Shown piece after piece: positions 307 to 31,529 of a stretch of 37,373 nt of DNA. A program made the position numbers and the translations under genes. The DNA comes from Trichosphaerium sp. ATCC 40318 (taxonomy: Eukaryota > Protista > Tubulinea), in assembly GCA_038496445.1 (NCBI GenBank), contig JALMLS010000226.1:1-37373 (forward strand), given 5' to 3'. How positions within the stretch are numbered: the first letter of the stretch is position 1; each line of letters opens with the position of its first letter. The notes below the pieces were generated by a model that did not search any database, was not told where the DNA came from, and saw nothing but the letters and a program-made list of their open reading frames with translations.

Positions 307-389
307 GAATTTAAAAAAAATTATTATTGAATTTATATAGTTTAGAAAAAAGAGTAATAAAAAAAAAAAAAAAGTAAAAAAAAAAAAAA

Positions 390-627: not shown

Positions 628-647
628 TAAAAAAGACATCATTAAAA
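593..647 (+). terminator. Hairpin with 20-bp arms spanning the atp9 stop codon (possible terminator or processing signal)
   Basis: ttttaatgatgtctttttta ... taaaaaagacatcattaaaa; also present at 17154-17208. Confidence 0.5.
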
Positions 648-852
648 GGATAGTTTATTTTTTATATTAGTAGATATCGCATATATTCTTTGTAGTTCTG
701 TTTTTTTTTTTTTTTTTTTCTATATAAAAAACATCTGTTAGTATAGGGGATTTTATTTTTTTTTTTTATTTAAATCTTTAAATTTTTTTATTAATTTAAA
801 GAGTAAAAAAAAGTAAAAAGTTTTCTATTAGAGTTTTTATTTTTATTATATA

Positions 853-3390: not shown

Positions 3391-3452
3391 TTTATAAAAG
3401 TAGAGAAAAAAAGATTTTTAATAAATAAAAAGTATATTATAAATTAAAAATA

Positions 3453-4960
3453 ATGTATTTATTAAGTTTTTATCAATATTTATGTTACATTAAGAGTGGT
3501 CATGTTCAACAAATCATAAAGATATAGGATGCTATATATATGAGCAAGTTTTTTTGGAGGAGTATGGGAACTATATTATCATGATAATACGTATAGAGAA
3601 TTAGGAATGCCTGTCCGTTAATTTTGTTCAAGATAACAAGTTTATAATGTAATCGTAACAGCGCATGTCTATTAATGATTTTTTTTTTCGTTATGCCTTT
3701 ATTAATAGGGGTTTAGGTAATTTTATAGTTCATTAAGTTTAGGGGCCCGGAGATGCATTCCCAAGAGTAAATAATTTAGGTTTCTGATTATTGCGCCTTC
3801 TTTATTATTATTAATGTGATCTTTGTTATAGGAGATGGTGCAGAGCAGGATGAACTTTATATCCATTACTTTCTGTATTAAGGCTAGTCCTGGAATGTCA
3901 TAGATGCTTGTATTTTGAGTTGCATATAGCCGGAATTTCATCAATATCGGTGCAATAAATTTTATGGTAACTATAATGAATATGCGATTATGGATACTTA
4001 TAGAATTGGTTGTTTGCAGTATCATTTATATAACAGCGGTATTATTATTATTGACATTACCTGTTTTAGAGGAGCTTTAGTTATGTTAATAACAGATCGT
4101 ATTTTAATACAACATTTTTTGATCCACAGGAGTGAGATATCCTGTTTTATATCACATATTTTTGATTTTTTTGGACATCAGAGTTTATATATTAATATTA
4201 CCAGCTTTTGTATAACTAGTGTAGTAATTTCTGTTGAACTTATAAAGAGGTTTATGTCATGATTCTATGGTTTATGCATGGTATGTATAGCAGTTTTAGG
4301 ATCTATTGTATGAGTCATCATATGTTTACAGCGGGTTTAGATGATGATACGAGGTATATTTTTATGACAGTAACTATGATAATAGCAATGCCTTCAGGGT
4401 TAAAGTTTTTGGTTGTTATCAACAATAATGTTTGTATAGTAGAAATGAAGAGTTCCGCTATTTTATGCTGCAGATTTGTACTAATGTTTAGTTTTGGAGT
4501 GTAACTGGTATTATTTTAGCAAACGTGTTTTAGATATAGCATTGCATGATACATATTATGTGTTGCTCATTTTCATTATGTTTTATCTTTAGTTCTGTGT
4601 TTGGAATTTTTGCGGGTTTTATCATGGAAGTTCTTTAATGTTTGGAAAAAAATATCCGATTTTATAGGAAGATTACAAATTTTGGGAAATTTTATAGGAG
4701 TAAATATGACTTTTTTGCCAATGCATTTGTTAGGATGGCGGTATGCCCAGAAGGATAGTGATTATCCAGATGCTTATGTTGCTTTAAATTTTTGATGTTC
4801 TGTTGGGCGTTATTTACTATCTGTGTTTATTTTTATTTATTTTATGTTATATTTTATGTCTATAGGAGAGTTTTTATATTTTATATTGTATACTCTTATG
4901 AAGATGCCTATGAGATTTAGTTGAAGATTACTTTTTAACAAAAGAGAGATCTTATTTTTA
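3453..4960 (+). CDS. cox1: Cytochrome c oxidase subunit 1 (duplicate copy; cryptogene with about 40 single-base gaps)
   Basis: STNHKDIG, YNVIVTAH, FPRVNN, GWTLYP, WFFGH(P)EVY, HHMFT, LHDTYY, AHFHYVLS, GMPRR, DYPDAY. 3' end uncertain. Confidence 0.97.
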
Positions 4961-5179
4961 AAGATAATTATAATTTTGGTGAGGATAAAGTTAGAAGTTT
5001 AAATGGTGTATTAGTCTTTAACTGTTTTTATTTTTTCGTGTTAAATCCAAATACAGGAATTTGAGTGTGCAAGTATACCTTTGAATTATGTAAGAAAAGG
5101 ATTGATGGTGTATCTACTCATTATTTGGTGCTTATTAATTTAATGTTTATTTATCTAGAAAGTATAAGAGGTTTTTTTA

Positions 5180-5645
5180 AATGGTTTTGTAGTCATAGAT
5201 AGTTGAAGTTAAAAAAATTTGTATAGTGAAAATAGATAGAAATCTCTACGCTACTCTTCTTTGATTATTTAGTTTTTTAAATTTTATTACGTCTTTTTCT
5301 TTCGTTTTTATGATCTTATAAAGTTTTTATTTTAAATTTTATTTAAAAGGTTTATTTTAGAGTGCGTGTTTTTAAAACATTAAGAAATTACGTAGATAAA
5401 TTTATTTTTTAGGTCATTTTTTATATCTTTTTAGTATGATTAATTTATATAAAGTTTATTATAGAAAATTATAATATGTTTTAGTATATATCTTATATAC
5501 TAAATAATTTTGCGCATATTTTTTGCTTTATAAAAAGTTCATATTTATGGAAAATAGGATTGTGCATCCACAAATTTTAATGAACTAAAAAATAGGAAAA
5601 GTACGTGAAGAGAAGGAAAAAAGGATTACTTTATTATGATTAGTT
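5180..5645 (+). CDS. rpl6: Probable ribosomal protein L6 (duplicate copy; cryptogene)
   Basis: Weak motifs (FKFYLKG..FRVR, FLGH, GKVRE..KG) plus its position just before rps13. Confidence 0.45.
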
Positions 5646-6040
5646 ATGAAAAATTTTATTTTAGTTGGTGTAATATTAAAAGTAAGGAGCAATTTCAGTA
5701 AATTTATCTGCGTTAGGGGGCTTTGTAGACGAAGGGTAGTAGAATATGTTTTAACTTAGGTATATCCCTTGCGAAAATTTGAGCAATTGGAATTTTAGGA
5801 AAGGGATGATTTTAAAGTATTATATTTTTTCTAATTATTATTTAGGTGAAAGGTTATGTGAGAATTAAAAAATATATAGAAGATATACAGATCTTATAGT
5901 AATAGAGGTTAAGTTACTAAGTGGTTACCTGTAAATGTCAACGAAGTAAGACTTGGTTAAAACATCAAATCTTTTAAATTGTGAAGACAAAAGAATTTGG
6001 AACCAAAATTTCAGATGAAATTATAAATGGTAAAATAAAA
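5646..6040 (+). CDS. rps13: Ribosomal protein S13 (duplicate copy; cryptogene)
   Basis: GLPVN(G)QRSKT(N)GKT matches the S13 signature GLPVRGQRTRTNAR. Confidence 0.85.
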
Positions 6041-6117
6041 AATAAAAGAATAACTAAAGACGTTTAAGAAAAAAAAGAAAAGAAAAAAAGAAAAAATAAA
6101 TATATTTAAAGTATATA

Positions 6118-8657
6118 TGCAGCATAAAATAGCGGAATTCTTCATTCTACTATACAAAACATTATTTGTTGATAACAACCAAAACTTAACCCTGAAGGCA
6201 TTGCTATTATCTTAGTTACTGTCATAAAATATACCTCGTATCATCATCTAAACCCGCTGTAAACAATATGATGACTCATACAATTAGATCTAAAACTGCA
6301 TACATACCATGAATAAACCATTAGATTCAGACATAAACTCTTTTATAAGTTCAACAGAAATTACTACCATAGTTTTATAAAAAAGCTGGTAATATTAATA
6401 TATAACTTCTGATGTCCAAAAAAATCAAAAAATCTGTGATATAACATAAAACAGGATCTCACCTCCTGTGGATCAAAAAATGTTGTGATAAAATTTACGA
6501 TCTGTTATTAACATAACTTAAAGCTACCTCTAAAACAGGTATTTGTCAATATAATAATAACCGCTGTTATATAAATGTACTGCTAAACAACCAATTACTA
6601 TAGTATCATAATCGCATTTTCATTATAGTTACCATTAAATTTATTGCACGATATTTTGATGAAATTCCGGCTATAGCAAATCAAAATACAAGCATCTATG
6701 TACATTCCAGGACTAGCCTTAATACAGAAAGTAATGGATATAAATTCATCCTGCTCTGCACCATCTCCTATACAAAGATCACATTAATAATAATAAAGAA
6801 GGCGCAATAATCAGTAACCTAAATTATTTACTCTTGGGAATGCATCTACGGGGCCCATAACTTAATGAAACTATAAAATTACCATAATCCCCTATTAATA
6901 AAGGCATAACGAAAAAAAAATCAATAATAGCATGCGCTGTTACGATTACTTTATAAACTTGTTATCTTGAACCAAAATTAAAGGACAGGCATTCCTATTC
7001 TTATATACAGTATTATTCAGATATATAGTTCCCATACTCCTCCAAAAAAACTTGCTCATAAATATAGCATCCTATATCTTTATGAAATTTGTTGAACATG
7101 ACCACTCTTAATTGTAATCATAAATATTGATAAATACTTATTTAAAATACATTATTTTTAATTTATATTATACTTTTTATTTATTAAATTCTTTTTTTCT
7201 CTACTTTTATTAAAAACTTAAATAATGGAATTAGTCAAAAAAACTTCCTTTTATATATTTTTTTACAGTTGTAAAAAAATATATATAACATTATTTTACA
7301 ATATTTTTTTACTACCATATTTAATCCTGATATTTGAATCATAAATATAAATTAAAATTAGCAGATCCTTTTTTTAACTTATATGTTATCGCAGTTCCTT
7401 TTTCGCACGTAGCTTTAACGCCAACCGGAACGTAAAACCGATAACGCTACCACAAGCGGTGCACCCTATTACCATAAGCCTCTATTCGTACTGAATTGGG
7501 CTCTATTTTTAATTTTTATCACAGAAGATAGGGGCAAACTGTCTCACGACGTTCTAAACCAGCTCACGTACCTCTTTAAACGACGAACAGTCGTACCCTT
7601 GGGAGCATACTCCCCCAGGATGAGATGAGGCGACATCGAGGTGCCAAACCGCTCGCAGATAAGAACTTTCAAAGGCAATAAGCTGTTATCCCTGGCGTAC
7701 TTTTTATCCGTTTGCGGATGCCCTACTGTAAGCCATCCGGAAAAACTTGCGACTTTTAATAATGTTAACCCTTTCTAGCTTACAGTCAGCTAAAAATAAA
7801 AACCATATGCACTACGGAAACTTTAAAGTACTGAATTACCTTTGTACACTCGTGATTACCTTTTAGGGAGCTTTCGCCCCAGACAAAACTATCCACCATG
7901 CATTTTTAATTTTACTTAAGATTAGATTTTTCCAACAAAAAATCAATATTCACTGACGGCTCCTTAAATGACCTAAACCATTAAATCATACCTCTTGATT
8001 ATACGGTTTTTTGCTTTCCTTAACCATACAAGGTTTAGTAAAGTGCACAGGGTCTTCCGTACCCGCTGCAATTTTTTTCGCATCTTCACGAAAACTTCAT
8101 TTCACTAAAATAACACTTGAGACAAGTAGAAGAGTCGTTACGCATTCATGCAGGACTACAATTAATAGCTAGGATTTTCGCTAACCTTAAGACGTCAAGG
8201 ATTACGGCCGCGTTTACTGCTGCTTATATTTCATTGCTTTTAAACTAATCCTTTTCACGATACAGCACGGGCAGGCATCGAACCTATAATTAATTTATAT
8301 TTAGCAGGGTCCTGTGTTTTAGTAAACTGTCGCTATTCTCTGTTCCGCTTCCCCCAAATACTTCTTAAAAATAAATTATTTTACACATTTTATATTTATT
8401 TTAAAAAACAATATTTTAGGTACAATCTACCGAAGTTACTGAGTTATTTTGCGAGTTCCTTAAGCATTATTCTTCTTTACTTATTGTTCTACAACTAATT
8501 ACCTGTGTCGGTTATTGGTACGTTTTTTTTTTTTTTATTTTTTATCTTGTAAGTTACAAAAAATTGATTATTTTTAGGATTAAATAACTAATTTTTTGTA
8601 ATTTAATTTTAATAAAATTGGCTTGAATATAACTAATATAACATTAGTCGGAATCTT
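6118..8657 (-). repeat. Block B: error-rich inverted copy of about 1958-4473 (cox1 5' part and rnl 3' part)
   Basis: Reverse complement of cox1/rnl with scattered extra errors; the junction lies on the shared 5-mer tgcag at 6118-6122. Confidence 0.95.
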
Positions 8658-10850
8658 GAAACCAAGATGTTATAAAAGGAAAAAGTATAGAAAGACTTAG
8701 GTGTTTAAGTCGAGAGGAAAAAGCCCAGACTATAGCTAAGCCCTTAATGTTTTTCAACTGGAAAGACGTAATAAAAGCGGAGATGGGCTAGAAGCAGCCA
8801 TTCTTTAAAGATGCGTAAACTCACGTATTGTTTTTTAAGCGTCATGATGTAAGGGCTCTAAATTATTTGCGAAGCTATAGAATTAATTTGGTAGCAGATG
8901 TATTGTATGTAAAAAACTGTACGTGAGTTTGGTTAAAATATCAATAGTATAAATGTTGCATGAGTAGCTTATATGTAAAAACATTATTACGAAAGATTAA
9001 GGTTTCCTTATCTATGTTAAACAGATAAGGGTTAGCGGTCCTTAAGGGAATGTGTTTGTAAGATTCCGACTAAGGTTATATTAGTTATATTCAGAGCAAT
9101 TTTATAGAAATTTAATTACAAAAAATAGTTATTGTAATCGTAAAATATCAATTTTTTTGTAACTTACAAGAAAAAAATAAAAAAAAAAAACGTACCAATA
9201 ACCGACACAGGTAATTAGTTGTAGAACAATAAGTAATAGAAGAATAATGCTTAAGGAACTCGCAAAATAACTCAGTAACTTCGGGAGATAGGTACCTAAA
9301 ATATTGTTTTTTAAAATAAATTAAAAGTGAAAATAATTTATTTTTTAAGAAGTATTTTGGGGGAAGCGGAACAGAGAAGAGCGACTGTTTACTAAAACAC
9401 AGGACCCTGCTAAATAGTATATGAAGTATAGGTTCGATGCCTGCCCGTGCTGTATCGTGAAAAGGATTTGTTTAAAAGCAATGAATATAAGCAGCAGTAA
9501 ACGCGGCCGTAATCCTTGACGTCTTAAGGTAGCGAAATTCCTAGCTATTAATTGTAGTCCTGCATGAAGCGTAACGACTCTTCTACTGTCTCAAGTGTTA
9601 TTTTAGTGAATTGAAGTTTTCGTGAAGATGCGAAAAAATTGCAGCGGGACGGAAGACCCTGTGCACTTTACTAAAACCTTGTATGGGTTAAGGAAAGCAA
9701 AAACACAGTATAATCAAGAGGTATGATTTAATGGTTTAGGTCATTTAAGGAGCCGTCAGTGGATATTGATTTTTTGTTGGAAAAATCTAATCTTAGTAGA
9801 AATTAAAAATGCATGGTGGATAGTTTGTCTGGGGCGAAGCTCCCTAAAAGGTAACGGAGTGTACAAAGGCTAATTCAGGACGTTAAAGTTCCGTAGTGCA
9901 TATGGTTTTTATTTTAGCTGACTGTAAGCTTGAAAGGGTTAACAGGGATTTAAAGTCGTCATAGTTTTCCGGATGCGCTTACAGGTAGGGCATCCGCAAA
10001 CGGATAAAAGTACGCCAGGGATAACAGCTTATTGCCTTTGAGAGTTCTTATCTGCGAGCGGTTTGGCACCTCGATGTCGGCTCATCTCATCCTGGGGGAG
10101 TAGGCTCCCAAGGGTACGACTGTTCGTCGTTTAAAGAGGTACGTGAGCTGGTTTAGAACGTCGTGAGACAGTTTGCCCCTATCTGCTGTGATAAAAATTA
10201 AAATTAGAGCCCAATGCAGTACGAGAGAGGCGTTATGGTAATAGGGTGCACCGCTTGTGGTAGCGTTATCGGTTTTACGTTCCGGTTGGCGTTAAAGCTA
10301 CGTTTTAAAAAAAATCAAAGTTTTTTAAAAAGTCAAGTAAAAAATACTAATTTTAATTATATTTATGAAAATTTCAGGATTAAATATGGAAGTATAAAAA
10401 AAGTCTCCCCAAATAATGTTATATATATTTTTTCAAGAACAATTAAAAAAAAAGAATATAAAGTTTCTATAAAAAGATTCTCTTTCTTTTTCAAGCATGC
10501 TTATAATTTTATCTTTTCAAATTTCATTTTTACTATCTATTATAGTATATCAATCCATTAAAACAAGTTCATGTATTTTAATATCTTTTCATAAATTTTT
10601 AATAGTTACATTAAGAGTCTTCATGTTCAAAAAATCAAAAAGCATCATAGGATGCTATCATATATGAGCAAGTTTTTTTGGGGAGTATGGGAACTTTATT
10701 ATCATGATAATACGTATAGAATTAGGAAATCTGTCCGTTAATTTGGTTAAATATTAACAAGTTTATAATGATAATCAAAATAGCCATGTTTATTAATTAT
10801 TTTTTTTTTTCGTTATGCCTTTATTAATTTTTTTTTAGGTAATTTTTTAA
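8657..10850 (+). repeat. Block C: direct copy of about 1543-3730 (rnl and start of cox1), degrading after about 10300
   Basis: Starts tgaaaccaagatgttataaa as at 1543; near-identical up to about 10300, then a mosaic. Confidence 0.93.
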
Positions 10851-11619
10851 TTCTACTTTAAATTTACATTTTTTTCACTTATATCATAATTTTCAATTAT
10901 AAATTCTACTCAGCTTAAATTCTCAAACATAACTGACAAATTACTTTCTTATTATTATTCCTTCGTTTTCTAAAGTATAAGTTACAAAATTAAAAAAATC
11001 AGCATCTTGACTTTGCTCAATTTCACCTATATGATCTACTATTTTTTTTTTTTAAACTCTTTATCATTTTGCATAAATAGAATAAAATTATTTATTTCTT
11101 CTAAATTAAGCATAGAATTAATAAAAAAATGATAATAAATAGAACACATAACTAATCATAAGATCATAGAAGCAAACGCACTATAGCTTCAAGTTAAACT
11201 ATATCCTTGGCTAGCTAGTTGCGTATATAGATCTGCTACCACTGTTGGATCTATAGGTACTAAATTGTCTAACTTATCCACTATTTCTTCTCTGCTTTTT
11301 TCTTCATTAAAGAACGTTAAGGTTAAGCCTCCCCCTCGAAGCTTAACCATTCAAAAAAATGAACCCTCCCTTTCGCTAATAAAGCATAATTATTTATCAA
11401 ATCTTCTTTAAAAAAAGGATTATTATAAAATACTAATTCTTTACTAAATAAAAAATAAAATTTAAAAACACTTATAAAACACCCCGCCATGTAATGTATT
11501 GAATTCAATACAAACCAAAGAACCAAAAATGATAGGAGCTCACTTTTTACATATTTCTTTAATATTACAAAATTAAACATGATAATTTTTCTTCTTTTTT
11601 TATATTTTAAACTTAACAA
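10850..11619 (-). CDS. Unassigned ORF with hydrophobic segments, truncated at the fold-back junction
   Basis: Long open stretches (MFNFVILKK...FEGE; EEKSREEIVDKLDNLVPIDPTVVADLY; SAFASMILWLVMCSIYYHFF) with only a few frame breaks. Confidence 0.55.
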
Positions 11620-11749
11620 TACCTATATAAATTACTCTATTACACTACACAAAATACACTGCATATATACTTTAAATATATTTATTTTTCTTCTTTTTCT
11701 TTTTCTTTTTTTTTCTTAAACGTCTTTTAGTTATTCTTTTATTTTTTAT

Positions 11750-12144
11750 TTTACCATTTATAATTTCATCTGAAATTTTGGTTCCAAATTCTTTTGTCTT
11801 CACAATTTAAAAGATTTTGATGTTTTACCATAGTCTTACTTCGTTGACATTTACAGGTAAACCACTTAGTAACTTTAACCTCTATTACTATAAGATCTGT
11901 ATATCTTCTTATATATTTTTTAATTCTCACATAACCTTTCACCTAAATAATAATTAGAAAAAAGATAATACTTTAAAATCATCCCTTTCCTAAAATTCCA
12001 ATTGCTCAAATTTTCGCAAGGCGATATACCTAAGTTAAAACATATTCTACTACCCTTCGTCTACAAAGCCCCCTAACGCAGATAAATTTACTGAAATTGC
12101 TCCTTACTTTTTAATATTACACCAACTAAAATAAAATTTTTCAT
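11750..12144 (-). CDS. rps13: Ribosomal protein S13 (cryptogene)
   Basis: GLPVN(G)QRSKT(N)GKTSK at about 11815-11870; ATG at 12144. Confidence 0.85.
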
Positions 12145-12614
12145 AACTTAATCATAATAAAGTAATCCTTTTTTCCTTCTCTTCACGTACTTTTCCTATT
12201 TTTAGTTCATTAAAATTTGTGGATGCACAATCCTATTTTCCTATATATATGAACTTTTTATAAAGCAAAAAATATGCGCAAAATTATTTAGTATATAAGA
12301 TATATACTAAAACATATTATAATTTTCTATAATAAACTTTTATATAAATTAAATCATACTAAAAAGATATAAAAAATGACCTAAAAATAAATTTATCTAC
12401 GTAATTTCTTATATGTTTAAAAACACGCACTCTAAAACTAAACCTTTTAAATAAAATTTAAAATAAAAACTTTATAAGATCATAAAAACGAAAGAAAAAG
12501 ACGCTAATAAAATTTAAAAAAACTAAATAATCAAAGAAGAGTAGCGTAGAGATTTTCTATCTATTTTCACTATACAAATTTTTTTAACTTCAACTATCTA
12601 TGACTACAAAACCA
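12145..12614 (-). CDS. rpl6: Probable ribosomal protein L6 (cryptogene)
   Basis: Weak motifs plus rpl6-rps13 synteny. Confidence 0.45.
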
Positions 12615-12839
12615 TTTAAAAAAACCTCTTATACTTTCTAGATAAATATAACATTAAATTAATATTAGCACCAAATAATGAGTAGATACACCATCAATCC
12701 TTTTCTTACATAATTCAAAGGTATACTTGCACACTCAAAATTCCTGTATTTGGATTTAACACGAAAAAATAAAAACAGTTAAAGACTAATACACCATTTA
12801 AACTTCTAACTTTATCCTCACCAAAATTATAATTATCTT

Positions 12840-14346
12840 TAAAAATAAGATCTCTCTTTTGTTAAAAAGTAATCTTCAACTAAATCTCATAGGCATCTTC
12901 ATAAGAGTATACAATATAAAATATAAAAACTCTCCTATAGACATAAAATATAACATAAAATAAATAAAAATAAACACAGATAGTAAATAACGCCCAACAG
13001 AACATCAAAAATTTAAAGCAACATAAGCATCTGGATAATCACTATCCTTCTGGGCATACCCGCCATCCTAACAAATGCATTGGCAAAAAAGTCATATTTA
13101 CTCCTATAAAATTTCCCAAAATTGTAATCTTCCTATAAAATCGGATATTTTTTTCCAAACATTAAAGAACTTCAATGATAAAACCCGCAAAAATTCCAAA
13201 CACAGAACTAAAGATAAAACATAATGAAAATGAGCAACACATAATATGTATCATGCAATGCTATATCTAAAACACGTTTGCTAAAATAATACCAGTTACA
13301 CTCCAAAACTAAACATTAGTACAAATCTGCAGCATAAAATAGCGGAACTCTTCATTCTACTATACAAACATTATTGTTGATAACAACCAAAAACTTTAAC
13401 CCTGAAGGCATTGCTATTATCATAGTTACTGTCATAAAATATACCTCGTATCATCATCTAAACCCGCTGTAAACATATGATGACTCATACAATAGATCCT
13501 AAAACTGCTATACATACCATGCATAAACCATAGAATCATGACATAAACCTCTTTATAAGTTCAACAGAAATTACTACACTAGTTATACAAAAGCTGGTAA
13601 TATTAATATATAAACTTCTGATGTCCAAAAAATCAAAAAATATGTGATATAAAACAGGATCTCCACCTCCTGTGGATCAAAAAATGTTGTATTAAAATAC
13701 GATCTGTTATTAACATAACTAAAGCTCCTCTAAAACAGGTAATGTCAATAATAATAATACCGCTGTTATATAAATGATACTGCAAACAACCAATTCTATA
13801 AGTATCCATAATCGCATATTCATTATAGTTACCATAAAATTTATTGCACCGATATTGATGAAATTCCGGCTATATGCAACTCAAAATACAAGCATCTATG
13901 ACATTCCAGGACTAGCCTTAATACAGAAAGTAATGGATATAAAGTTCATCCTGCTCTGCACCATCTCCTATAACAAAGATCACATTAATAATAATAAAGA
14001 AGGCGCAATAATCAGAAACCTAAATTATTTACTCTTGGGAATGCATCTCCGGGGCCCCTAAACTTAATGAACTATAAAATTACCTAAACCCCTATTAATA
14101 AAGGCATAACGAAAAAAAAAATCATTAATAGACATGCGCTGTTACGATTACATTATAAACTTGTTATCTTGAACCAAAATTAACGGACAGGCATTCCTAA
14201 TTCTATACGTATTATCATGATAATATAGTTCCCATACTCCTCCAAAAAAACTTGCTCATATATATAGCATCCTATATCTTTATGATTTGTTGAACATGAC
14301 CACTCTTAATGTAACATAAATATTGATAAAAACTTAATAAATACAT
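12840..14346 (-). CDS. cox1: Cytochrome c oxidase subunit 1 (cryptogene)
   Basis: Canonical cox1 motifs in shifting frames; ATG at 14346; 3' end approximate. Confidence 0.97.
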
Positions 14347-14409
14347 TATTTTTAATTTATAATATACTTTTTATTTATTAAAAATCTTTTTTTTCTCTAC
14401 TTTTATTAA

Positions 14410-16945
14410 AAACTTAATTAATGGAATCTAGTCAAAAAACTACCTTATATATATTTTTTTTACAGTTGTAAAAAAAATATATATAACATTATTTTACAAT
14501 ATTTTTTTTACTACCATATTTAATCCTGATATTGAATCATAAATATAAATTAAAATTAGCAGATTCTACTTATATGTTATCAGCAGTTCCTTTTTCGCAC
14601 GTAGCTTTAACGCCAACCGGAACGTAAAACCGATAACGCTACCACAAGCGGTGCACCCTATTACCATAACGCCTCTCTCGTACTGCATTGGGCTCTAATT
14701 TTAATTTTTATCACAGCAGATAGGGGCAAACTGTCTCACGACGTTCTAAACCAGCTCACGTACCTCTTTAAACGACGAACAGTCGTACCCTTGGGAGCCT
14801 ACTCCCCCAGGATGAGATGAGCCGACATCGAGGTGCCAAACCGCTCGCAGATAAGAACTCTCAAAGGCAATAAGCTGTTATCCCTGGCGTACTTTTATCC
14901 GTTTGCGGATGCCCTACCTGTAAGCGCATCCGGAAAACTATGACGACTTTAAATCCCTGTTAACCCTTTCAAGCTTACAGTCAGCTAAAATAAAAACCAT
15001 ATGCACTACGGAACTTTAACGTCCTGAATTAGCCTTTGTACACTCCGTTACCTTTTAGGGAGCTTCGCCCCAGACAAACTATCCACCATGCATTTTTAAT
15101 TTCTACTAAGATTAGATTTTTCCAACAAAAAATCAATATCCACTGACGGCTCCTTAAATGACCTAAACCATTAAATCATACCTCTTGATTATACTGTGTT
15201 TTTGCTTTCCTTAACCCATACAAGGTTTTAGTAAAGTGCACAGGGTCTTCCGTCCCGCTGCAATTTTTTCGCATCTTCACGAAAACTTCAATTCACTAAA
15301 ATAACACTTGAGACAGTAGAAGAGTCGTTACGCTTCATGCAGGACTACAATTAATAGCTAGGAATTTCGCTACCTTAAGACGTCAAGGATTACGGCCGCG
15401 TTTACTGCTGCTTATATTCATTGCTTTTAAACAAATCCTTTTCACGATACAGCACGGGCAGGCATCGAACCTATACTTCATATACTATTTAGCAGGGTCC
15501 TGTGTTTTAGTAAACAGTCGCTCTTCTCTGTTCCGCTTCCCCCAAAATACTTCTTAAAAATAAATTATTTTCACTTTTAATTTATTTTAAAAAACAATAT
15601 TTTAGGTACCTATCTCCCGAAGTTACTGAGTTATTTTGCGAGTTCCTTAAGCATTATTCTTCTATTACTTATTGTTCTACAACTAATTACCTGTGTCGGT
15701 TATTGGTACGTTTTTTTTTTTTATTTTTTTCTTGTAAGTTACAAAAAAATTGATATTTTACGATTACAATAACTATTTTTTGTAATTAAATTTCTATAAA
15801 ATTGCTCTGAATATAACTAATATAACCTTAGTCGGAATCTTACAAACACATTCCCTTAAGGACCGCTAACCCTTATCTGTTTAACATAGATAAGGAAACC
15901 TTAATCTTTCGTAATAATGTTTTTACATATAAAGCTACTCATGCAACATTTATACTATTGATATTTTAACCAAACTCACGTACAGTTTTTTACATACAAT
16001 ACATCTGCTACCAAATTAATTCTATAGCTTCGCAAATAATTTAGAGCCCCTTACATCATGACGCTTAAAAAACAATACGTGAGCTTTTACGCATCTTTAA
16101 AGAATGGCTGCTTCTAGCCCATCTCCGCTTTTATTACGTCTTTCCAGTTGATTATTATTTAAGGGCTTAGCTTATAGTCTGGGCTTTTTCCCTCTCGACT
16201 AGAATCTTCGCACCTAAGTCTTTCTATACTTTTTTATTTTTATAACATCTTGGTTTCACTATACCCGTAAATAACTTAGTTACTCCGGAATAATATTAGT
16301 GCCATACTCTACAAAATCAAAATACGCTTGCTTAAACAAGTTTCGCAGAAAACCAGCTATCACCAAGTTTGATTAGCTTTCACTCCTAACCAACACTCAT
16401 CGAGCCTCTTGCAACAGACACCGGTTCAGCCAAAAACTTGGTGTTGTTAGATCACTTGGTTTCGGTCATATTTTTTAGACTTTACAGATTTACTCTTTGC
16501 TTTCACTACGCCTCCCTTAAAGTTAAGCTTGCTCAAAAATATACTCATTGGCCCATTATACAAAAGTACGCTGTCATATCTTTTTTATACTCCAACCGTT
16601 AAAGTATTAAGTTCATTTCTTTTCAACTATCCCTACGATATCTTTTTCAACTTCCTTCACAGTACTTTTACACTATCGGTTATCAAAAAATTCTTACTTT
16701 AGCAGCAGGCACTGCCTATTCGATTTTCTCTACTTAAAAGAACTCAACGCATTTGTCACCACTACTAACGTTTCTACACGATGTTTTTTTTATAGGTACT
16801 GAGATGTTTCACTTCCCTATTTTTATTTTTCTATTTTAAAAATTTAAAAAGATACCTAAAAATCATAGCATTGTACTACTCAATTAAAGTTTTCGCTTTA
16901 TTAAAGCGTCTTTTTTCTTGATACCTAGTAATCCCCTTAATACTT
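14410..16945 (-). rRNA. rnl: Mitochondrial LSU rRNA
   Basis: Universal LSU motifs of domains I-VI; ends approximate. Confidence 0.97.
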
Positions 16946-17173
16946 AATATATAATAAAAGTAAAAACTCTAATAGAAAACTTTTACTTTTTTTTACTCTT
17001 TAAATTAATAAAAAAATTTAAAGATTTAAATAAAAAAAAAAAATAAAATCCCCTATACTAACAGATGTTTTTTATATAGAAAAAAAAAAAAAAAAAAAAC
17101 AGAACTACAAAGAATATATGCGATATTCTACTAATATAAAAAATAAACTATCCTTTTAATGATGTCTTTTTTA

Positions 17174-17407
17174 CTATGTATACATAATTAAAAAAGACAT
17201 CATTAAAACTAATAAACCCATCGCCTCAGATAAAGCAAAACCTAAAAGTGCTGTTCTAAATAAATTAGCTTCTAATTCAGGATTTCTAGATACTGCTATT
17301 AATAAACCTCCAAAAACTATACCTATACCTATACTTGCTCCTCCTACACCGACAGTACATACTCCTGCTGCTAATACTTTTGCTGCTAATACTATTTGTC
17401 ATTCCAT
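17174..17407 (-). CDS. atp9: ATP synthase subunit 9, intact 77 aa
   Basis: 234-nt uninterrupted frame with TGA=W: MEWQIVLAAKVLAAGVCTVGVGGASIGIGIVFGGLLIAVSRNPELEANLFRTALLGFALSEAMGLLVLMMSFLIMYT*. Confidence 0.97.
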
Positions 17408-17491
17408 TTTTTTTTTTTTTTTACTTTTTTTTTTTTTTTATTACTCTTTTTTCTAAACTATATAAATTTCAATAATAATTTTTTTAAATTC

Positions 17492-18726
17492 TTATCTATC
17501 AATTTCTCCAAAAACTAAATCTAAAGATCCTACTACGGCAACCATATCTGCTAACATACCATGCTAGATAAAGAATCTAATGCCTGAAGGTGTAAAAACC
17601 TGGTGATTTTATTCGACATCTCACCGGCTTGTAGATCCATTTGATTTTAAAAATACACCAATTCACCTTTAGGTGCTCTACTATACTATAAGTTTCTCCG
17701 TATTTACACTAGGACACCTGAAAAATATTTAAAGAAATGTATTATAGCTTCATACTTGTCTTCATTAAATGCTTTGCTGGTGGTAATACTTATAATTATT
17801 TACTTTAACACTTTGTAATTTAAATTTTACATATATATTAAACACTGCTTAATTATCTTACGCTTTCTTTCATTTCCAAAATACGCAACATAAAACGATC
17901 ATACAATCACCATAAACTCCACAGGTATTTTAAACTTAAGTAAGTTATACACTCGTAAGGTTGCATGATTCTTAAATCTCAACAAAAACCAACGGACTTA
18001 AAATAACTCCAGAAAACCATAATCAACTGCCATCCTAAAAGGTGCTATAGCTATATTTACTAAACGCTGCTAAATATTCTATTATCTCTTATTAAATCTT
18101 CTAATCAAAAATTCTATATATAAATGATTCAAAAAAGATCCTATATCAGATATTAGTGTTGGTGTATATCGTTCACTAAACGCCAGGTCTAAAATATGCT
18201 GCATGAAACCTCGCACTGATACTCTTTCATAAAATTCCAACACCTTTTCCCTTCTTCAAACGCTCAGAGAAAAGGTGTTAATGCACAAGATCTAACGCAT
18301 GTGTTGTTAGAGCAATAAATGATTTAAAATACGTGTTAATCCATAAAAATAACGCGTATACTTTTGCACGTAACGGATACTCACTCCTAATAAATTTCAA
18401 CTGCTTTAACATAAACTTGTTCTTGACCATCATAGATACATATCTAACCTATCAAAATAAGGCAAACTTTGCAAGTAGGTTTATACTCTATTAACTTTTC
18501 AGTACCTCTATGCAATAACCTATATGAGTATCTATTTCAATAACAGTTTCCCATATAATTTTACTACTAGTCTTAATACACCATGAGCTGCTGATGCTGC
18601 GGACCAAAATTTAGTGTTAAAATAGCTACTTTAAAAAAAACACTTGCAAAAACTTGTTTTTTAACGACCCCACATTACTTTAATTTTTCTTGAGTTACGT
18701 AAATAACGTCAAATAAACGTATTCAT
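17492..18726 (-). CDS. nad7: NADH dehydrogenase subunit 7 (cryptogene)
   Basis: LTLNFGPQH(P)AAHGVLRLV, LHRGTEKL, LPYFDRLDYVSM, DLVFGEIDR*. Start approximate. Confidence 0.95.
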
Positions 18727-18749
18727 TTCAAAACAGTTATTTTTAGCTA

Positions 18750-19146
18750 CACTATAACATTTAAACTAATTTTTAATAACACTCTCCACCTATTCTTTTA
18801 TATTTTTTATAGGTAAAAATCATTACTACTTATTCACCATTTGATATAGATATTATAAATAAACAAAATATACTCTTTTTTTGAAAAAAAAACGTTCAAA
18901 TGAATAAAAGACATAAACTCTCGCTTCCTGGCGTACTAACTAGCGCATTGTTTTTATTATCGGTGTTACTCCAATGTACTTAAAAAAACCTTTATCTGAT
19001 GTTATGTAAAACATATAACATAATGCAACTTCTATTTTAAATAGATGTAGTAATTTAAAACTTTTTTATTAAAGATAAATATACATACTATGCCTATAAA
19101 GTAAACTACACGTATATTAGATACAGCAAAAGCCAAAGATAAAACA
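18750..19146 (-). CDS. rps8: Ribosomal protein S8 (cryptogene)
   Basis: LAFAVSNIR, LKYIG..PIIK, LVSTPG..RVY, IGGE; follows rps14. Confidence 0.8.
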
Positions 19147-19530
19147 CTATCAACTTGATTAGATATTCCTGCAAATAACTAAACGATGCAAAATTTTTAA
19201 ATTCATGACGTGACATTTAGCAAATCTTACTACCGATCTGCTCGACCTGTTATATGACACCAATTTTAACTAAAGTAAAACCTCTAAGTTTCGCATATGA
19301 GCTATTATATTTAAAAATAAAGCCGCTTTAATCTATATTTTATTGTTTTTTGACTATTTAGAAATGTATATAATATTTTTTATTTCATTTATTTTTAATA
19401 ATTTCTTTTTAAATATTCTAAATGAAGCTTTAGCTTATATGACTATTATATTTATTTTTAGCTATAAACATTATTTTTTTTATTTTAAAAACTTTTCTAG
19501 ATTATGATCAAATAATTGCTTATTACTCAT
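19147..19530 (-). CDS. rps14: Ribosomal protein S14 (cryptogene)
   Basis: CHITGRA, MSRHEFK, C-terminal SSW*. Confidence 0.85.
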
Positions 19531-19534
19531 ATAT

Positions 19535-20070
19535 AACTTAAAAACAAATAGTATAAAAAAAAAATTCTTTTGAAAAAATTAATCAAAATAAAGAGGCGCT
19601 TCCCAACCAGAAAACCTAATAATTGTGTTCATCGAATAAATATTTAACATCGTAAACTTTAAGATTAAACGAAACCTTTTGTCAACTTTATTTTTTTTAT
19701 AGATCATTTATACTTCATCAATTTATTACTTTTTCCTTGAAAAAGAATGCATAAAGACTTCCGCTATAGGATCCTTTAAAAATATACTATTTTTGTTTGA
19801 TAAGACTATCTCCTGTATAACTATTTAATAAAAAACCAACCTATATAAAGCAGCTGGTTTATTGCTTCACCAAAATCAAAGTTAAACCGCCACCGACGAA
19901 TGTATATATCATGATTATAAAATTCATTAAAAAAAACTCTGTAAAGTGTTTAAAATATAATGTTGCAAAAAACATTGATCTTTTTTTTTATTTAAATTTC
20001 TTTAATTTGCTTATCTATAAGTAAACAGCAAACACAAAACTAAATCTCTTTACTTTAAATTATTTTTCAT
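19535..20070 (-). CDS. rpl5: Probable ribosomal protein L5 (cryptogene)
   Basis: Mainly synteny (between rpl14 and rps14) and size; ATG abuts the rpl14 stop; no strong motif seen. Confidence 0.5.
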
Positions 20071-23217: not shown

Positions 23218-23276
23218 TTTATTTATTATTGCATCTTTTATATTTAAAATTACTAGAAAACAAAAAATATAAAATT

Positions 23277-23393
23277 TAAAGAACTTAATTTATTTTTAAT
23301 TTCGCTTCTTCCCTTGAAACTATAAAAAATTATAAACAAATAACTATCCTTTTTAGATATTCATTTATAATACAAGTAACATTCTCTTTTTTT
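23277..23393. repeat. 117-bp intergenic direct repeat, copy 1 (upstream of nad3)
   Basis: Matches 30351-30467 with 3 substitutions. Confidence 0.92.
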
Positions 23394-24367: not shown

Positions 24368-24571
24368 AGACAATTGCTCGGCTTAATCAGCTTTTGCTAT
24401 AAATAGAAATAGATTATTTACTAGCTTTTTATTCATAATCTATTTCTATTTATAGCAAAAGCTGATTAAGCCGAGCAATTGTCTTCATGATTTTAAAACC
24501 TGGTTTTTTACATGTAAAAAACCAGGTTTTAAAATCATGAAGACAATTGCTCGGCTTAATCAGCTTTTGCT
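24368..24571. repeat. Nested palindromes / inverted triplication
   Basis: aagacaattgctcggcttaatcagcttttgct occurs in +,-,+ orientation. Confidence 0.92.
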
Positions 24572-27500
24572 TTTCTTCTTTTTTTTTTTTTCCTCCCGTT
24601 TCAATCACATTCAAAATTTTCTAGAAAAACCTTGCGTAAAGAAATTAAGAACATAAGCCTGCTATGTTCAAAACCTTCACTTAAAACTAAACGATAATTT
24701 CTAAAATCATTTAAAGTATTTATATAAGAAAACCTTGGTGAATTAGCTTTAAAAATTGGTTGTGTATTATCCTTAAAATCTAAACGAGCACGTAAATCAC
24801 GTAGAAAGCTTTTACGTAAATTTTTAGCTAAAGTAGCTCGTCTATCAGATAGACGAGCTACTTTAGCTAAAAATTTACGTAAAAGCTTTCTACGTGATTT
24901 ACGTGCTCGTTTAGATTTTAAGGATAATACACAACCAATTTTTAAAGCTAATTCACGCTTCTTTTTAGTTATATCTGAAAATATACCTTTTTTCAATAGA
25001 TAAGATATATAATTATAATAATATACCTTATCATATTTTTTCTTTTTTTTTTTCCTTTTTTTTTCTTTTTTTTTTTTTAGTTTTTTTCTAATAAGATTAT
25101 ATATCTTTAATATTTTCTTAAAAGACCTTATTTTATATACCTTTCCTTTTTTTATTATTTTTTTTTTTTTTTTTTTTTTTTCCTTTTTTTTTAATTTATA
25201 AATTAACTTTTTATCTTTTATACGAAATTTTCTTCATCTTTTCCCATAACCTCTCCTATTATTTCTCTTTTTTTTTATTTTTGCTCATTTTCATGCTTTT
25301 ATTTGACTTTTTTTGAAATAATTATTTTTTTTTCCTCTTTTTAAACTTTTAGTTTTTTTTAAAGTAAACCTTTTTTTATTATTTAAATAATTATTTCAAA
25401 AAAATGATTTAAATAATCTCCCATTAAACGTTTTCTCTATAAAGTTAATACGTCTATTTCTTAATTTTTTTAAATATATAGTTCTTATCTTCTTTTCGTT
25501 TCATTTTTTTCCTTTGTTATATTTTAATCAAAGATTATATTTAATTTTTCTCGATAGTTTTCCACTTTTATCTAAACTTCAAATTAATTTATTATAATAT
25601 AAGCTGTCCCTCGCTAAAAGAGTAGAACGTATTAATATATTCATCATATTATTAAAACCTAGATTATTTGTTGTAACTTTTTTGGTCTTTTTATTTTTCA
25701 TTTGAACCATTGTTTAATAAATCTTATTTCCTTACGTTTACCTTCTTTTTCTCTAAAAGCATTTAATTTTATTTTTTTTATAAGTCTTCATAAACCATAA
25801 ATATCTATACTATGTTTATATTTACGACGTATTAACTGCAATAGTTTGGCTCTACCTTTATTTTTAAATATTATTCAATGACGCCATACTCAAAATAATC
25901 TATCTTTACGATCCTCACCATAAATATATCTTAATTTTCTATAAAATTCTTTTCATTTTTTTTTTTCATTAAAAAACAATCAATTTTTTCCAAATGATTT
26001 TAATTTTAACTATTAGGTAGAAATCATCTTACATTTCTATTTTTTTTAAAATTTACACATTGATTTTTGCTACCAAATAATCATTTTTTATAAAATTTTT
26101 TATTTTGTCACCGTCTTTTTGATATAAATTTTTTAAATTTTACAAAATTTCCTTTTCAAAGGTATGCTAAGTTATTTCGTAATTTAAATAACCAGTTTTT
26201 TTACGCATACGTTTGACAATACGTTGCATAAAAGATCGTGCTGCATTTCTAATGCAGCACGATCTTTTATGCAACGTATTGTCAAACGTATGCGTAAAGC
26301 TTTGACTATTTAACAAAATCCCCCAGCTTTTTTACGTTTTGAGAAATCGACTTTATTATAATAAAGTCGATTTCTCAAAATAAAATTTTTAAAAGATAAC
26401 CTTGTGTTTAAATCAAAAGGTTTATGGAATCGTAAAACGTTTCGCTAGACGCTTTTCCTAAAATTTAGGAAAAGCGTCTAGCGAAACGTTTTACGATTCC
26501 ATAAACCTTTTGATTTAAACGTATTTAATTTTATTTGACAAGATTTAGTTGCTTTGTTTTTAAATAAATTTTGCTTTCAAAATTTATTTATTTTTTTATT
26601 AACCTTTTCCAACATAGCAAAACGCTTCTTTCTACTAATATATTTATACTTTCTCCACTTTTTTTTTCTTTTTTTATATACATTCTTATTTAATACCTTA
26701 TTTTTCTTTATTTTTAATAAACGTTTTTTTTTTAACAATCGTTTTTTCTTTAAAAATCTAATATATTTTTTTTTATTATCTATTATTTTATACTTTATTT
26801 TACCTCACTTTTTTTTTATTAAAACTCATGCTTGTAATCTTCTATTTCTATTTTTTGATTTTTTTTTTTCTTTTTTTTTTAATTTTAATCTTTTACGCCA
26901 TTTTGTACCTAAAATATATCCTCATTCTTTTTTTTTTTTTGCTTTTTTTTTTTTTAGTATTTTACGTATCCCATATCAAAACCATTCTTTTTCTAAATTT
27001 TTTTTTAAACTAACACTTTTTTTTTCTTTTTCATTCTTTTTTTTCCGTTTCATTCTTTTTTTGTTTGCTTTTAAAATTCATCCTTTATAAAAACTATTAT
27101 AATAATTTTTATAAATTTTTCTATATATATTTTTTTTTTCTTCTTTTACTTTTTTCCCTCTTTTTTTATAAATTAAATTTCTTAAGCTTTCTAATTTTTT
27201 TTTTTTTTCTTTTTTTTTTTTTAAGTATAAAAATCTCATTAAATTTTTATACTTAGTTTGTTCTACGTTTTTTCTTTTATTTTTCAATTTAACATAATAA
27301 AAAAAAAGAAGAGATTTTATATTAAATTTGATTCTTCTTTTTTTTCTAATAACTAAAAATTTAAAAAACTTATGATTAAAATTTTTAATCATTTTAATCA
27401 TTTTATTTTTTAATATTAATATCATAAGTTTATTTAACTTATATTTTCTTTTTATTTTCTTAATCTCTTTTTTATATCTTTTTTTTTGCTTTATTATTTT

Positions 27501-28451
27501 TTTAATCTCTTTTTTTATTGCTTTTTTTTTTTTCCTAAGTTTTTTAAAAAATTTTTTTCTTTTTTTTTTAATCTCTTCTTTTTTTTCAATTTTTTTTTGT
27601 TTTATTCTTTCTTGCCTGCGATCTCATGCTCTTTTTTTTCTAAAATAACCTTTTGTATATCTACCTACTAAAAATTTTAATACCTTTTTTTTTTTTTTCT
27701 TTTTTTTTAATATTCTTTTTATTTTATTACCTTGACTTTTTTTGGTTTTTAAAATTTTTATTTTAGAATTAAAAATTTTTATTTTATATTTTACATTAAA
27801 TTTAAATTTTTTCAGAAGCTTCTGAAAAAATTTAAATTTAATGTATTTTTTTTTATAATGTTCTTTTTTTATCTTTTTTATTTTTTCTTTCCTTTTTTTT
27901 GTTTTTTTTTTTCTTTCCTTTCTAAAATATAAAAAATACTGACGTCGTAAGTATTTTTTATATATTTTACTTGGTTTTTTTACTATTCTTTTTATTTTTT
28001 TTAATAAAAACCTTTTTCTAATGTAACGTTTATGAAAAAACAATGAAGGTTTTAAAATTATATTTTTTACGTGATATTTTATTAAGTCAAAGTTTTCTTT
28101 CTTTTTTAGATAGTCAATACACGTTGGACGTACGTCCAACGTGTATTGACTATCTAAAAAAGAAAGAAAACTTTGACTTAATAAAATATCACGTAAAAAA
28201 TATAATTTTAAATTACTTTCTTTAATTTTACTTTTAATTTTACCTACTAAATCAATATTAAAACTAACTTCTTTTCTTTCTTTTAAACATGTATTTATAC
28301 CTTCACTTTTATTTGTTTCTTTTAGATATGTATTTATACCTTCACTTTTATTTGTTTCTTTAAAAAAGATCCTATCGCGATTTTTTAAAGAAATATCCAG
28401 GTTTTTTCTTACTAGTAAAATTAAAGAGACCCAAAGGTTGTTTTTTTTCAC
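24555..28451 (-). CDS. Giant Lys/Arg-rich unassigned ORF (may extend to about 28860)
   Basis: ORF-track pieces 27624-28451, 27078-27425 and 24601-24996 are linked by long stretches that are open when TGA=W; the breaks I saw are few and mostly at homopolymers. Confidence 0.6.
24738..24956. repeat. 219-bp palindrome (109-bp arms, 1-nt loop)
   Basis: Centre ...gtctatc a gatagac... at 24847. Confidence 0.95.
26200..26520. repeat. Three adjacent palindromes: 26200-26298, 26337-26380, 26406-26520
   Basis: Arms of 48, 22 and 57 bp with loops of 3, 0 and 1 nt. Confidence 0.93.
27792..27845. repeat. 54-bp perfect palindrome
   Basis: Centred on cagaag|cttctg. Confidence 0.9.
28051..28212. repeat. 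162-bp perfect palindrome with no loop
   Basis: Centred on ggacgt|acgtcc; the same peptide appears on both strands in the ORF track. Confidence 0.96.
28282..28362. repeat. 39-bp in-frame tandem duplication
   Basis: KETNKSEGINTYL / KETNKSEGINTCL on the minus strand. Confidence 0.9.
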
Positions 28452-28815
28452 AAATAACCTTTGGGTCTCTTTAATTTTACTAGTAAGAAAAAACCTGGAT
28501 ATTTCTTACTAAGGTTATCTAATATTATTTCTTCGCTGGTATACTTAATTTTAAATTAATTTAAAATTAAGTATACCAGCGAAGAAATAATATTAGATAA
28601 CCTTAGTAAGAAATATCCAGGTTTTTTCTTACTAGTAAAATTAAAGAGACCCAAAATTAATGACTTAATTACTATTAAATTTTTATCGATAGGTAAGCGG
28701 GATATAAAGTTTACGTCTCTCTTTTAGTTAACTAAACAAAGACGTAAACTTTATATCCCGCTTACCTATCGATAAAAATTTAATAAAGCGGGATATAAAG
28801 TTTACGTCTTTGTTT
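28388..28815. repeat. Two inverted triplications (about 28388-28654 and 28674-28815)
   Basis: aagaaatatccaggttttttcttactagtaaaattaaagagacccaaa occurs +,-,+; aagcgggatataaagtttacgtct occurs +,-,+. Confidence 0.92.
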
Positions 28816-29936: not shown

Positions 29937-30350
29937 TCACTAGTTAGTAATTCAAAACTAAATTTCTTTTTTTCAAAACATAAAGAAACCTTTTGTTATA
30001 GCAACTCAGTAAAACCATCACTTCAGCATTACAATTAAAACTATAATTATTACCACTTAGCTATACCATTTATCCAAATACATCCACCTACATAACCATC
30101 CATGTAGTCATACCTACACAATATCTGTTTGACACACTAAAGATGCCCTATTAAAATTATATGCTTCATTATAACACGTAAACCGTCGTAACCTAATCAC
30201 AAAGAATAAAAACAATAGGTCTTACTCTTTTTTTAAAATGTAAACTATATTATTAAAATCTTCTTTTAACCAACCTACAATGCTAAACCTAAAAACACTT
30301 AAATATAAAAAAAAAAATAAAAGCTATCTAAAAAACAAAAAAAAATAAAA

Positions 30351-30467
30351 TAAAGAACTTAATTTATTTTTAATTTCGCTTCTTCCCTTGAAACTATAAA
30401 AAATTATAAACAAATAACTATCTTTTTTAAATATTCATTTATAATACAAATAACATTCTCTTTTTTT
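30351..30467. repeat. 117-bp intergenic direct repeat, copy 2
   Basis: Matches 23277-23393. Confidence 0.92.
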
Positions 30468-30491: not shown

Positions 30492-31514
30492 TTAAAAAAA
30501 AATAGATATTAAAAAATATATAACTTTTTTTAATATTTCAACAAATAAAAAAAAATCATTATCCATATCTAAAAAAATCTGAGTAGTTTCATTTAAACAA
30601 TCATAACAACCTACCATATTTTCTTCATAACTACAATATAAATTTCCATCAATATTTTCACCAATTTCCCTTACCAGTTGATTTTCTCCGGGAAACACTA
30701 TGTCAATTCCTTCTAAAGTATCTTTTCCTCCATAATCTTCTTCCTCAAAAGTCACAATATTCTCAAAAATTTCATTTGAACCATCAGATGCAATAGCTTC
30801 ATCTAAATTTAATGTATCTGATGAACTATCATCTAGTTCATCAGATACATTAAATTTAGATGAAGCTATTGCATCTGACAATAACTCATCTAAATTTGGA
30901 TTATTATATCCTTGAAAATTTTCTGTCCCTTGATAAGTAGGTTCATCTTCGATATTTACTATATTTTCTCTATAATTACCTCAATTGTAAGACTCTAAAG
31001 CTTGCTCCATTATTTTTACTGTTTCACTTGCAACGTCTAACTCTACCTCTACTTTTGGTATTTGTTGCTGCAATTCTAAAATTCCCTCAATTATTTTTTC
31101 GTCTAAATCTAAATCTGGATCTTCAAATTCAAAAGCTGGTAATATTAATATATTTTGCGGTTCAAAATATGCTTCACAATTCTCAAGATTCACATCGTTT
31201 TTTAAATTTTTATACCCTAAATTATAGCGAAGCACCTGATCAATACAGTCCATATCTACAGAGATTATATGATTATTACTATTATAATAAAAACCTGCAG
31301 CAAAACCTAAACAAACTATAAATAATACACTTGTTACTCCTAATAAAATGAACCTATTATGTATAACCTCCTCTAAATTTTGAGGTTCTAATATCAATCC
31401 TGGTATAGACACGTAGGCCCCTTTGCTTTTTTTGCTTTTTAGGCAATTAAAAAAAACAAAAAAAAAACGTGCCATTTTTTCCATTATTTCATCAACAATT
31501 TTAGAATTTTCCAT
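30492..31514 (-). CDS. Unassigned 340-aa acidic protein with a putative transmembrane helix
   Basis: Track ORFs 30981-31514 and 30492-30881 are in the same frame and join through TGA=W (1023 nt); hydrophobic stretch FILLGVTSVLFIVCLGFAAGFYY; D/E-rich remainder. Confidence 0.8.
30784..30878. repeat. 95-bp hairpin (45-bp arms, 5-nt loop) inside ORF340
   Basis: tcagatgcaatagcttcatc...gatgaagctattgcatctga. Confidence 0.93.
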
Positions 31515-31529
31515 GATAAGTAAGCTTAT

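Follow-up and report, generated by a model that had tools for sequence, protein, structure and literature searches.

An atp9 that receives no insertions beside a heavily insertion-edited nad7 in the mitochondrial DNA of Trichosphaerium sp. ATCC 40318

Introduction

The closest described counterpart of the RNA editing considered here is found in the heteroloboseid amoeba BB2 (Yang et al. 2017), in which 43 of 44 mitochondrial protein genes are edited, the single exception being left unnamed in the main text (PMC5421314). In that system almost all genes receive single-nucleotide insertions in the RNA, each identical to an adjacent encoded nucleotide, no motif surrounds the sites (PMC5421314), and the mtDNA carries a large inverted repeat; all of these features recur at the locus described below. 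It was proposed for BB2 that one template base is read twice by the transcribing polymerase (PMC5421314), and by analogy the same would probably apply here. The two systems also differ in several respects. BB2 has 475 sites in a 119-kb genome, compared with about one per 33 nt in the nad7 gene of the present genome; and the four URFs of BB2 are edited, in contrast to the unbroken long orphan ORFs of the present genome. G accounts for 84% of the insertions in BB2, for 66% at the nad7 sites here and for 3 of 12 among the rnl sites listed.

Physarum and other myxomycetes (MICOTREM) provide a second point of comparison, with a transcriptome that is heavily insertion-edited at regular spacing and a few genes that remain unedited (PMC3152335, PMC10048350). 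Among the latter, php15 and php25 of Physarum and nad3 of Didymium are transcribed and unedited (PMC3152335). As in the present genome, many unassigned myxomycete ORFs are free of sites, and Physarum also has extragenic insertions in the 3′ UTR of atp9. In contrast, the letter inserted in myxomycetes is mostly C and need not copy its neighbor, and Physarum and Lycogala edit atp9 and leave unedited a set of genes different from that seen here (PMC10048350). A third process of relevance is retroprocessing, which removes editing sites in plant mitochondria: contiguous sites are lost when reverse-transcribed mature RNA recombines with the genome, and the loss is often localized within a gene or transcript (PMC4987113).

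Here we analyze the atp9 locus of Trichosphaerium sp. ATCC 40318, in which a gene without any insertion follows an edited nad7. By the defining rule the editing is of the BB2 type, and the exemption of one short gene has the precedents given above; the value of the locus lies in the matched control that it provides and in a comparison across seven lineages.

Results

The atp9 frame and its neighbors

The stretch of DNA that was analyzed, referred to here as the window, comprises 37,373 nt (contig JALMLS010000226.1 of assembly GCA_038496445.1). The atp9 gene, which encodes subunit c of ATP synthase, occupies positions 17174–17407 on the minus strand, with its ATG at 17405–17407, 77 sense codons and a TAG stop at 17174–17176, and is encoded entirely in the DNA. 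An earlier reading, made from the sequence alone, had placed a perfect 77-codon frame between a broken nad7 and a broken rnl. The frame was confirmed in this position on the minus strand, the same strand as that of nad7 (17492–18649) and rnl (14504–16959), and it is open over all 77 codons; its perfection, however, depends on the reading of TGA at codon 3 (17399–17401, minus strand) as Trp, this codon being the sole flaw in the frame under the bacterial code. The assignment of TGA to Trp follows from three observations: TGA occupies the conserved Trp of the F-W-FFGHPEVY motif in cox1, the edited nad7 mRNA contains two TGA codons and no TGG, and the atp9 of one relative (L090) has TGG at codon 3.

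The identity of the product is supported by a match to Pfam ATP-synt_C (PF00137) with E = 2.8e-12, which scores 47 bits where the cut-off is 24 and extends over all 60 positions of the profile. The same domain is carried by all 109 of the atp9 homologues retrieved. The translation includes a Gly-rich first helix, GVGGASIGIGIVFGG, and the motif FALSEAMG with the conserved carboxylate of the second helix, both of which are invariant in seven lineages; the Glu of the latter motif is the presumed proton-binding residue.

The same earlier reading had singled out atp9 as alone in needing no insertion. This holds among the recognizable conserved genes of the window, but long orphan ORFs are also unbroken. 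Under code 4 these comprise frames at 26478–28505 (676 codons), 35166–36653 (496), 24556–25713 (386), 30492–31529 (346), 36574–37263 (230) and 34687–35262 (192), each of them on the minus strand. They are A-rich, ten unbroken ORF pieces gave no Pfam match, and a word search with a 275-aa piece of the 676-codon ORF returned no relatives. Editing spares a whole class of ORFs and not only atp9.

RNA and DNA compared across nad7 and atp9

A public JGI contig of 1725 nt (L087), found by look-up of the exact atp9 protein, contains an intact nad7 of 397 residues (Pfam Complex1_49kDa, PF00346 on record) followed by atp9. We infer that this contig derives from RNA: it comes from the same strain, restores a canonical Nad7, and resembles the RNA runs and not the DNA run. 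Its positions 1–1725 align to 18782–17097 of the window, where a global alignment contains no substitutions and only differences in length. Thirty-six of these are single-nucleotide insertions within the coding sequence of nad7 (17492–18649, minus strand), a cryptogene that serves as the positive control on this contig; the edited ORF translates to the canonical 397-aa Nad7, and its 1194 nt carry one insertion per 33 nt. The entire set between 18757 and 17563 amounts to 38 single letters (25 G, 7 A, 3 C and 3 T in nad7 and just upstream), each of which adjoins an identical base (38 of 38), with a spacing of 16–52 nt over the 36 spacings measured. The last nad7 insertion, at 17563, is separated by 69 nt from the end of the final sense codon. 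Two G insertions, at 18757 and 18652, precede the called start of nad7; one lies within the end of an upstream ORF, and the second is 4 nt before the nad7 start of the public annotation.

The nad7 density was taken from this direct alignment of RNA and DNA in place of a dynamic programme for stop avoidance, the results of which are lower bounds (at least 17 insertions in nad7 and at least 18 in cox1). For cox1, the shortfall in length relative to what we assume to be the usual length of the protein suggests about one site per 31 nt.

Over atp9 (positions 1414–1647 of the contig), 0 of 234 nucleotides differ from the window DNA. With no insertion in 234 coding nucleotides, the atp9 transcript is not a substrate of BB2-type editing. 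Two RNA runs (X16 and X17) also yielded atp9 contigs, which cover 17219–17395 with no gaps, compared with 12 gaps per 405 nt and 17 per 770 nt (one per 34–45 nt) in the rnl contigs of the same runs; for atp9 these runs provide gap counts per contig, and the site-level RNA evidence is that of L087. Since X16 holds rnl only in its edited form and has no coverage of nad7, the atp9 contigs of the two runs are not carry-over of DNA. The rnl gene (14504–16959, minus strand; Rfam LSU match), which lies downstream of atp9, follows the doubling rule in its own insertions: among the 12 of 48 indels listed, a neighboring single base is doubled in all 12. Only 3 of the 12 rnl sites listed received G on the sense strand, compared with 25 of 38 (66%) at the nad7 sites. 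A DNA run (X2), by comparison, has no gaps relative to the window in rnl, nad7 and the 3′ part of atp9, and matches 16984–17287 exactly. The gene is complete in the DNA and transcribed, and its RNA equals the DNA over the whole coding sequence, a result that we regard as virtually certain. The sequence-only reading had held that atp9 needs no insertion, and had pointed to a cDNA comparison by which this could be checked; the RNA in fact receives none, being identical to the DNA at 234 of 234 positions in L087 and free of gaps in X16 and X17.

One difference occurs in the 3′ flank, at 17125–17126 (minus strand), where the DNA has AA and the RNA contig AAA. This +A at 17125 is located 49 nt past the atp9 stop, and represents at most one insertion. 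At the same locus, one repeat copy (copy A) has a single A and the other (copy B) has two, and the relative L089 has AA. The additional letter may be an extragenic editing site, as in the atp9 3′ UTR of Physarum, or a strain difference.

Determinants of site choice

Since one RNA contig is edited 36 times in nad7 and then not at all in atp9, insertion is decided locally, site by site, and not per transcript or promoter. Nor does the short sequence context decide insertion. Exact look-alikes of the edited nad7 sites occur in atp9 14 times as 5-mers and twice as 7-mers, none of them edited, and nad7 itself contains 35 5-mer and five 7-mer look-alikes that are unedited. The presence of nad7 and atp9 on one RNA contig constitutes a natural matched control for site choice in BB2-type editing, one that rules out a per-transcript or short-context rule, and a nad7 segment and atp9 form a clean pair of templates for tests of cis-determinants.

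Flanking elements of atp9

On the 5′ side, an A15-GT-A15 leader (17408–17439, minus strand) abuts the ATG, and all relatives have a purine-rich run in its place; here the RNA departs from the DNA only in the lengths of the A-runs (−1 A at 17425 and +1 A at 17406). On the 3′ side, a hairpin spans 17154–17208 (minus strand), with 20-nt arms at 17154–17173 and 17189–17208 that are 100% complementary. It covers the last 11 codons of atp9, the stop codon and 20 nt beyond, and is predicted to fold in RNA with −27.9 kcal/mol (z = −6.15). The inner 17 pairs are 100% paired in six lineages, and compensatory exchanges have altered two of them (UA to CG, AU to GC), such that a synonymous codon change is matched in the 3′ arm. 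Both the A-run leader and the 3′ hairpin had been anticipated from the sequence alone; both are present and conserved. Stem-loops at the 3′ ends of plant mitochondrial mRNAs, such as that of pea atp9, are thought to act as signals for processing and stability. The atp9 hairpin resembles these in being an inverted repeat at the 3′ end of the coding sequence that is conserved with compensatory changes, but differs in that one arm is inside the coding sequence, the stop codon is in the stem, and the RNA contig extends 57 nt past the hairpin. The contig continues for 78 nt past atp9, to a U-run, and since 57 nt of this lie beyond the hairpin, the latter is not an absolute RNA end.

Between atp9 and rnl, an element at 17037–17151 (minus strand) comprises a T-run, TATATAAAAAACA and GGGGATTTT, and is repeated at 34550–34664, with 76% identity over 116 nt. 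Both copies are preceded by an unbroken ORF and a hairpin and followed by an edited gene (rnl in one case, the nad4/nad2 block in the other). The element is a candidate promoter or processing signal.

Conservation across related lineages

Six further lineages were represented by DNA in metagenome contigs of protein-cluster members (L001/L002, L088, L089, L090, L091 and L092/L093), and these contigs are 77–89% identical to the window. In all seven lineages atp9 is co-linear, intact and without indels, despite differences at 14–43 of 234 nucleotides; third codon positions account for 57 of the 66 variable columns, and amino-acid changes number 0–1. Alongside this intact atp9, the nad7 of L001, L002 and L088–L091 lacks the same letters as the window DNA, and the 5′ part of rnl in L092 is DNA-like. 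The relatives’ contigs cover 11 of the nad7 sites, each site by 1–5 contigs, and reveal neither gain nor loss. Both the intact state of atp9 and the nad7 site positions are common to at least seven lineages with near-saturated synonymous sites, and are hence old and frozen. Seven lineages with frozen positions provide an initial picture of the evolution of such sites.

The sequence-only reading had proposed atp9 as an internal control against base-calling error, and had suggested that the gene be compared in related taxa. Both proposals were borne out, in that atp9 is intact next to unedited nad7 or rnl in the six relatives, and their short-read contigs agree with the window. The atp9 locus settles the concern that the apparent editing is an artifact of base calling. 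A scan of JGI metagenomes with atp9, which returned 80 loci, gave none above 64% identity outside the clade. The next-best atp9 hits (P0002 and P0005) were considered as members of the editing clade and rejected; both are ordinary unedited genomes with an intact rps13-rps11-atp9 arrangement.

Discussion

Proposed erasure of sites through cDNA

Why atp9 has no sites can be approached from the extent of the region that lacks them. The tract without insertions spans about 438 nt (17126–17562, minus strand) and takes in the final 69 nt of nad7 together with the spacer, atp9 and the hairpin; between positions 1257 and 1696 of the RNA contig there is no insertion outside homopolymers. The explanation that we tentatively prefer, while remaining some way from confident in it, is that a burst of site gain long ago was followed by recombination with a cDNA of the transcript 3′ end, through which the sites were lost. 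Specifically, the old gene set would have accumulated sites in an ancient burst, and a cDNA of the mature nad7-atp9 3′ end would later have recombined (retroprocessing), wiping out the sites over a 3′-terminal tract of ~440 nt. Site gain would since have practically stopped, such that atp9 remained clean, and the long orphan ORFs, which are also clean, would perhaps be younger than the burst.

Three features of the tract favor erasure. The site-free tail of nad7, at 69 nt, exceeds all 36 of the measured spacings (maximum 52); the site-free stretch extends to the 3′ hairpin; and G-runs have the same share in atp9 DNA (0.29) as in the edited nad7 mRNA (0.27), compared with 0.18 in nad7 DNA. It is this share of G-runs that discriminates between the two states, and not a depletion of GG in cryptogenes, the observed/expected ratio of GG being ~1 in all genes. 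With sites already missing from the 69 nt ahead of the nad7 stop, the evidence tilts slightly toward tract-wise erasure. That the ~438-nt tract is, specifically, the footprint of cDNA-mediated gene conversion is possible but somewhat doubtful. The tract is similar to those of plant retroprocessing, which differs in acting on C-to-U sites and in that loss was demonstrated against relatives that keep the sites; here, all six relatives share the site-free atp9.

Several considerations count against erasure. A site-free tail of 69 nt is only mildly unusual (e^−2.1 = 0.12, Poisson), and the spacer and UTR need no frame, so that missing sites there carry little weight. With edited atp9 absent from all six relatives compared, loss looks the same as never having gained sites, and one ancestral state in seven lineages amounts to a single evolutionary event. 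Moreover, should the +A at 17125 be genuine editing and lie within the mature RNA, the tract would stop short of the RNA 3′ end. If erasure through cDNA is nevertheless correct, it would be the first case of retroprocessing that erased insertional editing sites in a protist mitochondrion, and, together with the lack of site turnover and the site-free orphan ORFs, it would imply one ancient burst of sites, frozen since.

Purifying selection as an alternative

Alternatively, sites may never have been fixed in atp9, a short and extremely constrained gene whose product is present in many copies per ATP synthase ring, if deletions that depend on editing were purged by selection. We consider this unlikely, although it retains some appeal: the 0–1 amino-acid changes against 57 variable third positions across seven lineages attest to the constraint, and the assembly of only atp9 and rnl from this stretch in X16 and X17 fits an abundant mRNA. 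Contig depth, however, is not a measure of expression, and a frameshift would be equally lethal in nad7, the conserved C-terminus of which bears 11 sites in its last 400 nt. Furthermore, Physarum and Lycogala edit atp9 (PMC10048350), so that subunit c permits insertional editing. Selection also leaves unexplained the site-free tail of nad7 and the unbroken orphan ORFs.

Late arrival of the gene as an alternative

It is improbable that atp9 was instead replaced after the burst, by a copy from another mitochondrion, the nucleus or a plasmid, with a similar origin for the orphan ORFs. The unbroken state of those ORFs shows that site-free DNA entered or arose in this genome, and the spacer between nad7 and atp9 is a hot spot for insertion, as evidenced by a 427-codon ORF in L001 and L002; in addition, the nearest atp9 outside the clade, at 68% identity, comes from unedited genomes. 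The gene nevertheless uses TGA for Trp and has a base composition like that of its neighbors, and its divergence (14–43 of 234 nt) resembles that of the nad7 tail (~16%), as expected after long co-inheritance. No donor was identified, and a tree built on 77 residues would be unreliable. The 427-codon orphan ORF occupies L002:233–1516 and L001:611–1516, which represent one lineage, in place of the 85-nt spacer of the window; it has no counterpart in the window by tblastn and no Pfam hit on record.

A separate transcription unit as an alternative

A further suggestion of the sequence-only reading, that atp9 forms a separate transcription unit, is not supported by the RNA contig, which contains nad7, the spacer, atp9 and 78 nt beyond, although sequences joined in one contig need not come from one molecule. 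We consider it very improbable that atp9 is transcribed from its own promoter, in the A-run leader, by a non-editing complex or a different mode of the polymerase. The conserved A-rich leader at the ATG and the conserved 3′ hairpin would suit such a unit, as would the presence of atp9 without nad7 contigs in X16 and X17, but the A-runs by themselves could account for the recovery of atp9 RNA from poly(A)-selected libraries, and one RNA contig covers nad7, the leader, atp9 and the 3′ flank without a break. The need for editing is, moreover, a property of the DNA, for which a special polymerase is unnecessary.

Chance

That randomly falling sites simply missed a 234-nt gene is harder still to credit. 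At the nad7 density 7.06 sites are expected in 234 nt, in keeping with the 7–8 gaps estimated earlier from the DNA, and the Poisson probability of none is 8.6e-4; the nad7 sites are, in addition, spaced more evenly (16–52 nt) than random ones, and all 961 of the 234-nt intervals slid along the nad7 mRNA hold 6–9 insertions, never fewer than six. The G-runs point the same way. Nearly half of the 51 in nad7 mRNA contain an inserted G, whereas all 12 in atp9 are DNA-encoded, the chance of which is roughly 0.5^12 given the nad7 share. In favor of chance, atp9 is probably the shortest conserved protein gene, and unedited short genes occur in other systems, namely nad3 of Didymium, php15 and php25 of Physarum, and one of the 44 genes of BB2 (PMC3152335, PMC5421314).

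Assembly artifacts and repeats

An artifact, in which assembly from cDNA reads or selective polishing of the locus put the edited form in place of the DNA, has a negligible probability: the probable source sample (run X1) contains both edited and unedited contigs, and about 70 single-base indels separate the two repeat copies, but atp9 is intact beside unedited nad7 or rnl in the metagenome contigs of six lineages, the DNA run X2 is exact over 16984–17287, and selective polishing, named at the outset as a possible objection, is excluded by these independent contigs. Across 15800–19800 of the window, run X1 has edited and unedited contigs at high depth, and one of its contigs, of 2.2 kb, carries 11 of ~60 expected insertions and looks like a mosaic of RNA and DNA paths. 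Assemblies from the X1 sample could mix edited and unedited states.

The large inverted repeat pairs 1–6122 with 17795–11659 at 98.65% identity, with 85 differing columns that are mostly single-base indels, many of them outside long homopolymers. It includes a second copy of atp9 at about 390–627 (plus strand), in which the frame is broken by +T (406) and +AGT (504–506); these extra letters have no support in the RNA contigs, the DNA contigs or the six relatives compared. The X2 DNA contigs agree with the 11659–17795 copy wherever they overlap it. The repeat copy at the contig end is probably a noisy consensus of lower quality, and the broken atp9 within it assembly noise. The adjoining region, 6115–10853, has more copies of rnl and cox1 segments, 92–93% identical, rearranged and placed head to head at 8657, with Rfam rnl fragments at 7518–8473 and 8987–10193; it is either a real palindromic rearrangement or an assembly chimera. 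Within the single-copy region, a direct repeat of 142 nt occurs at 23253–23393 and 30328–30467, with 94% identity between the two copies.
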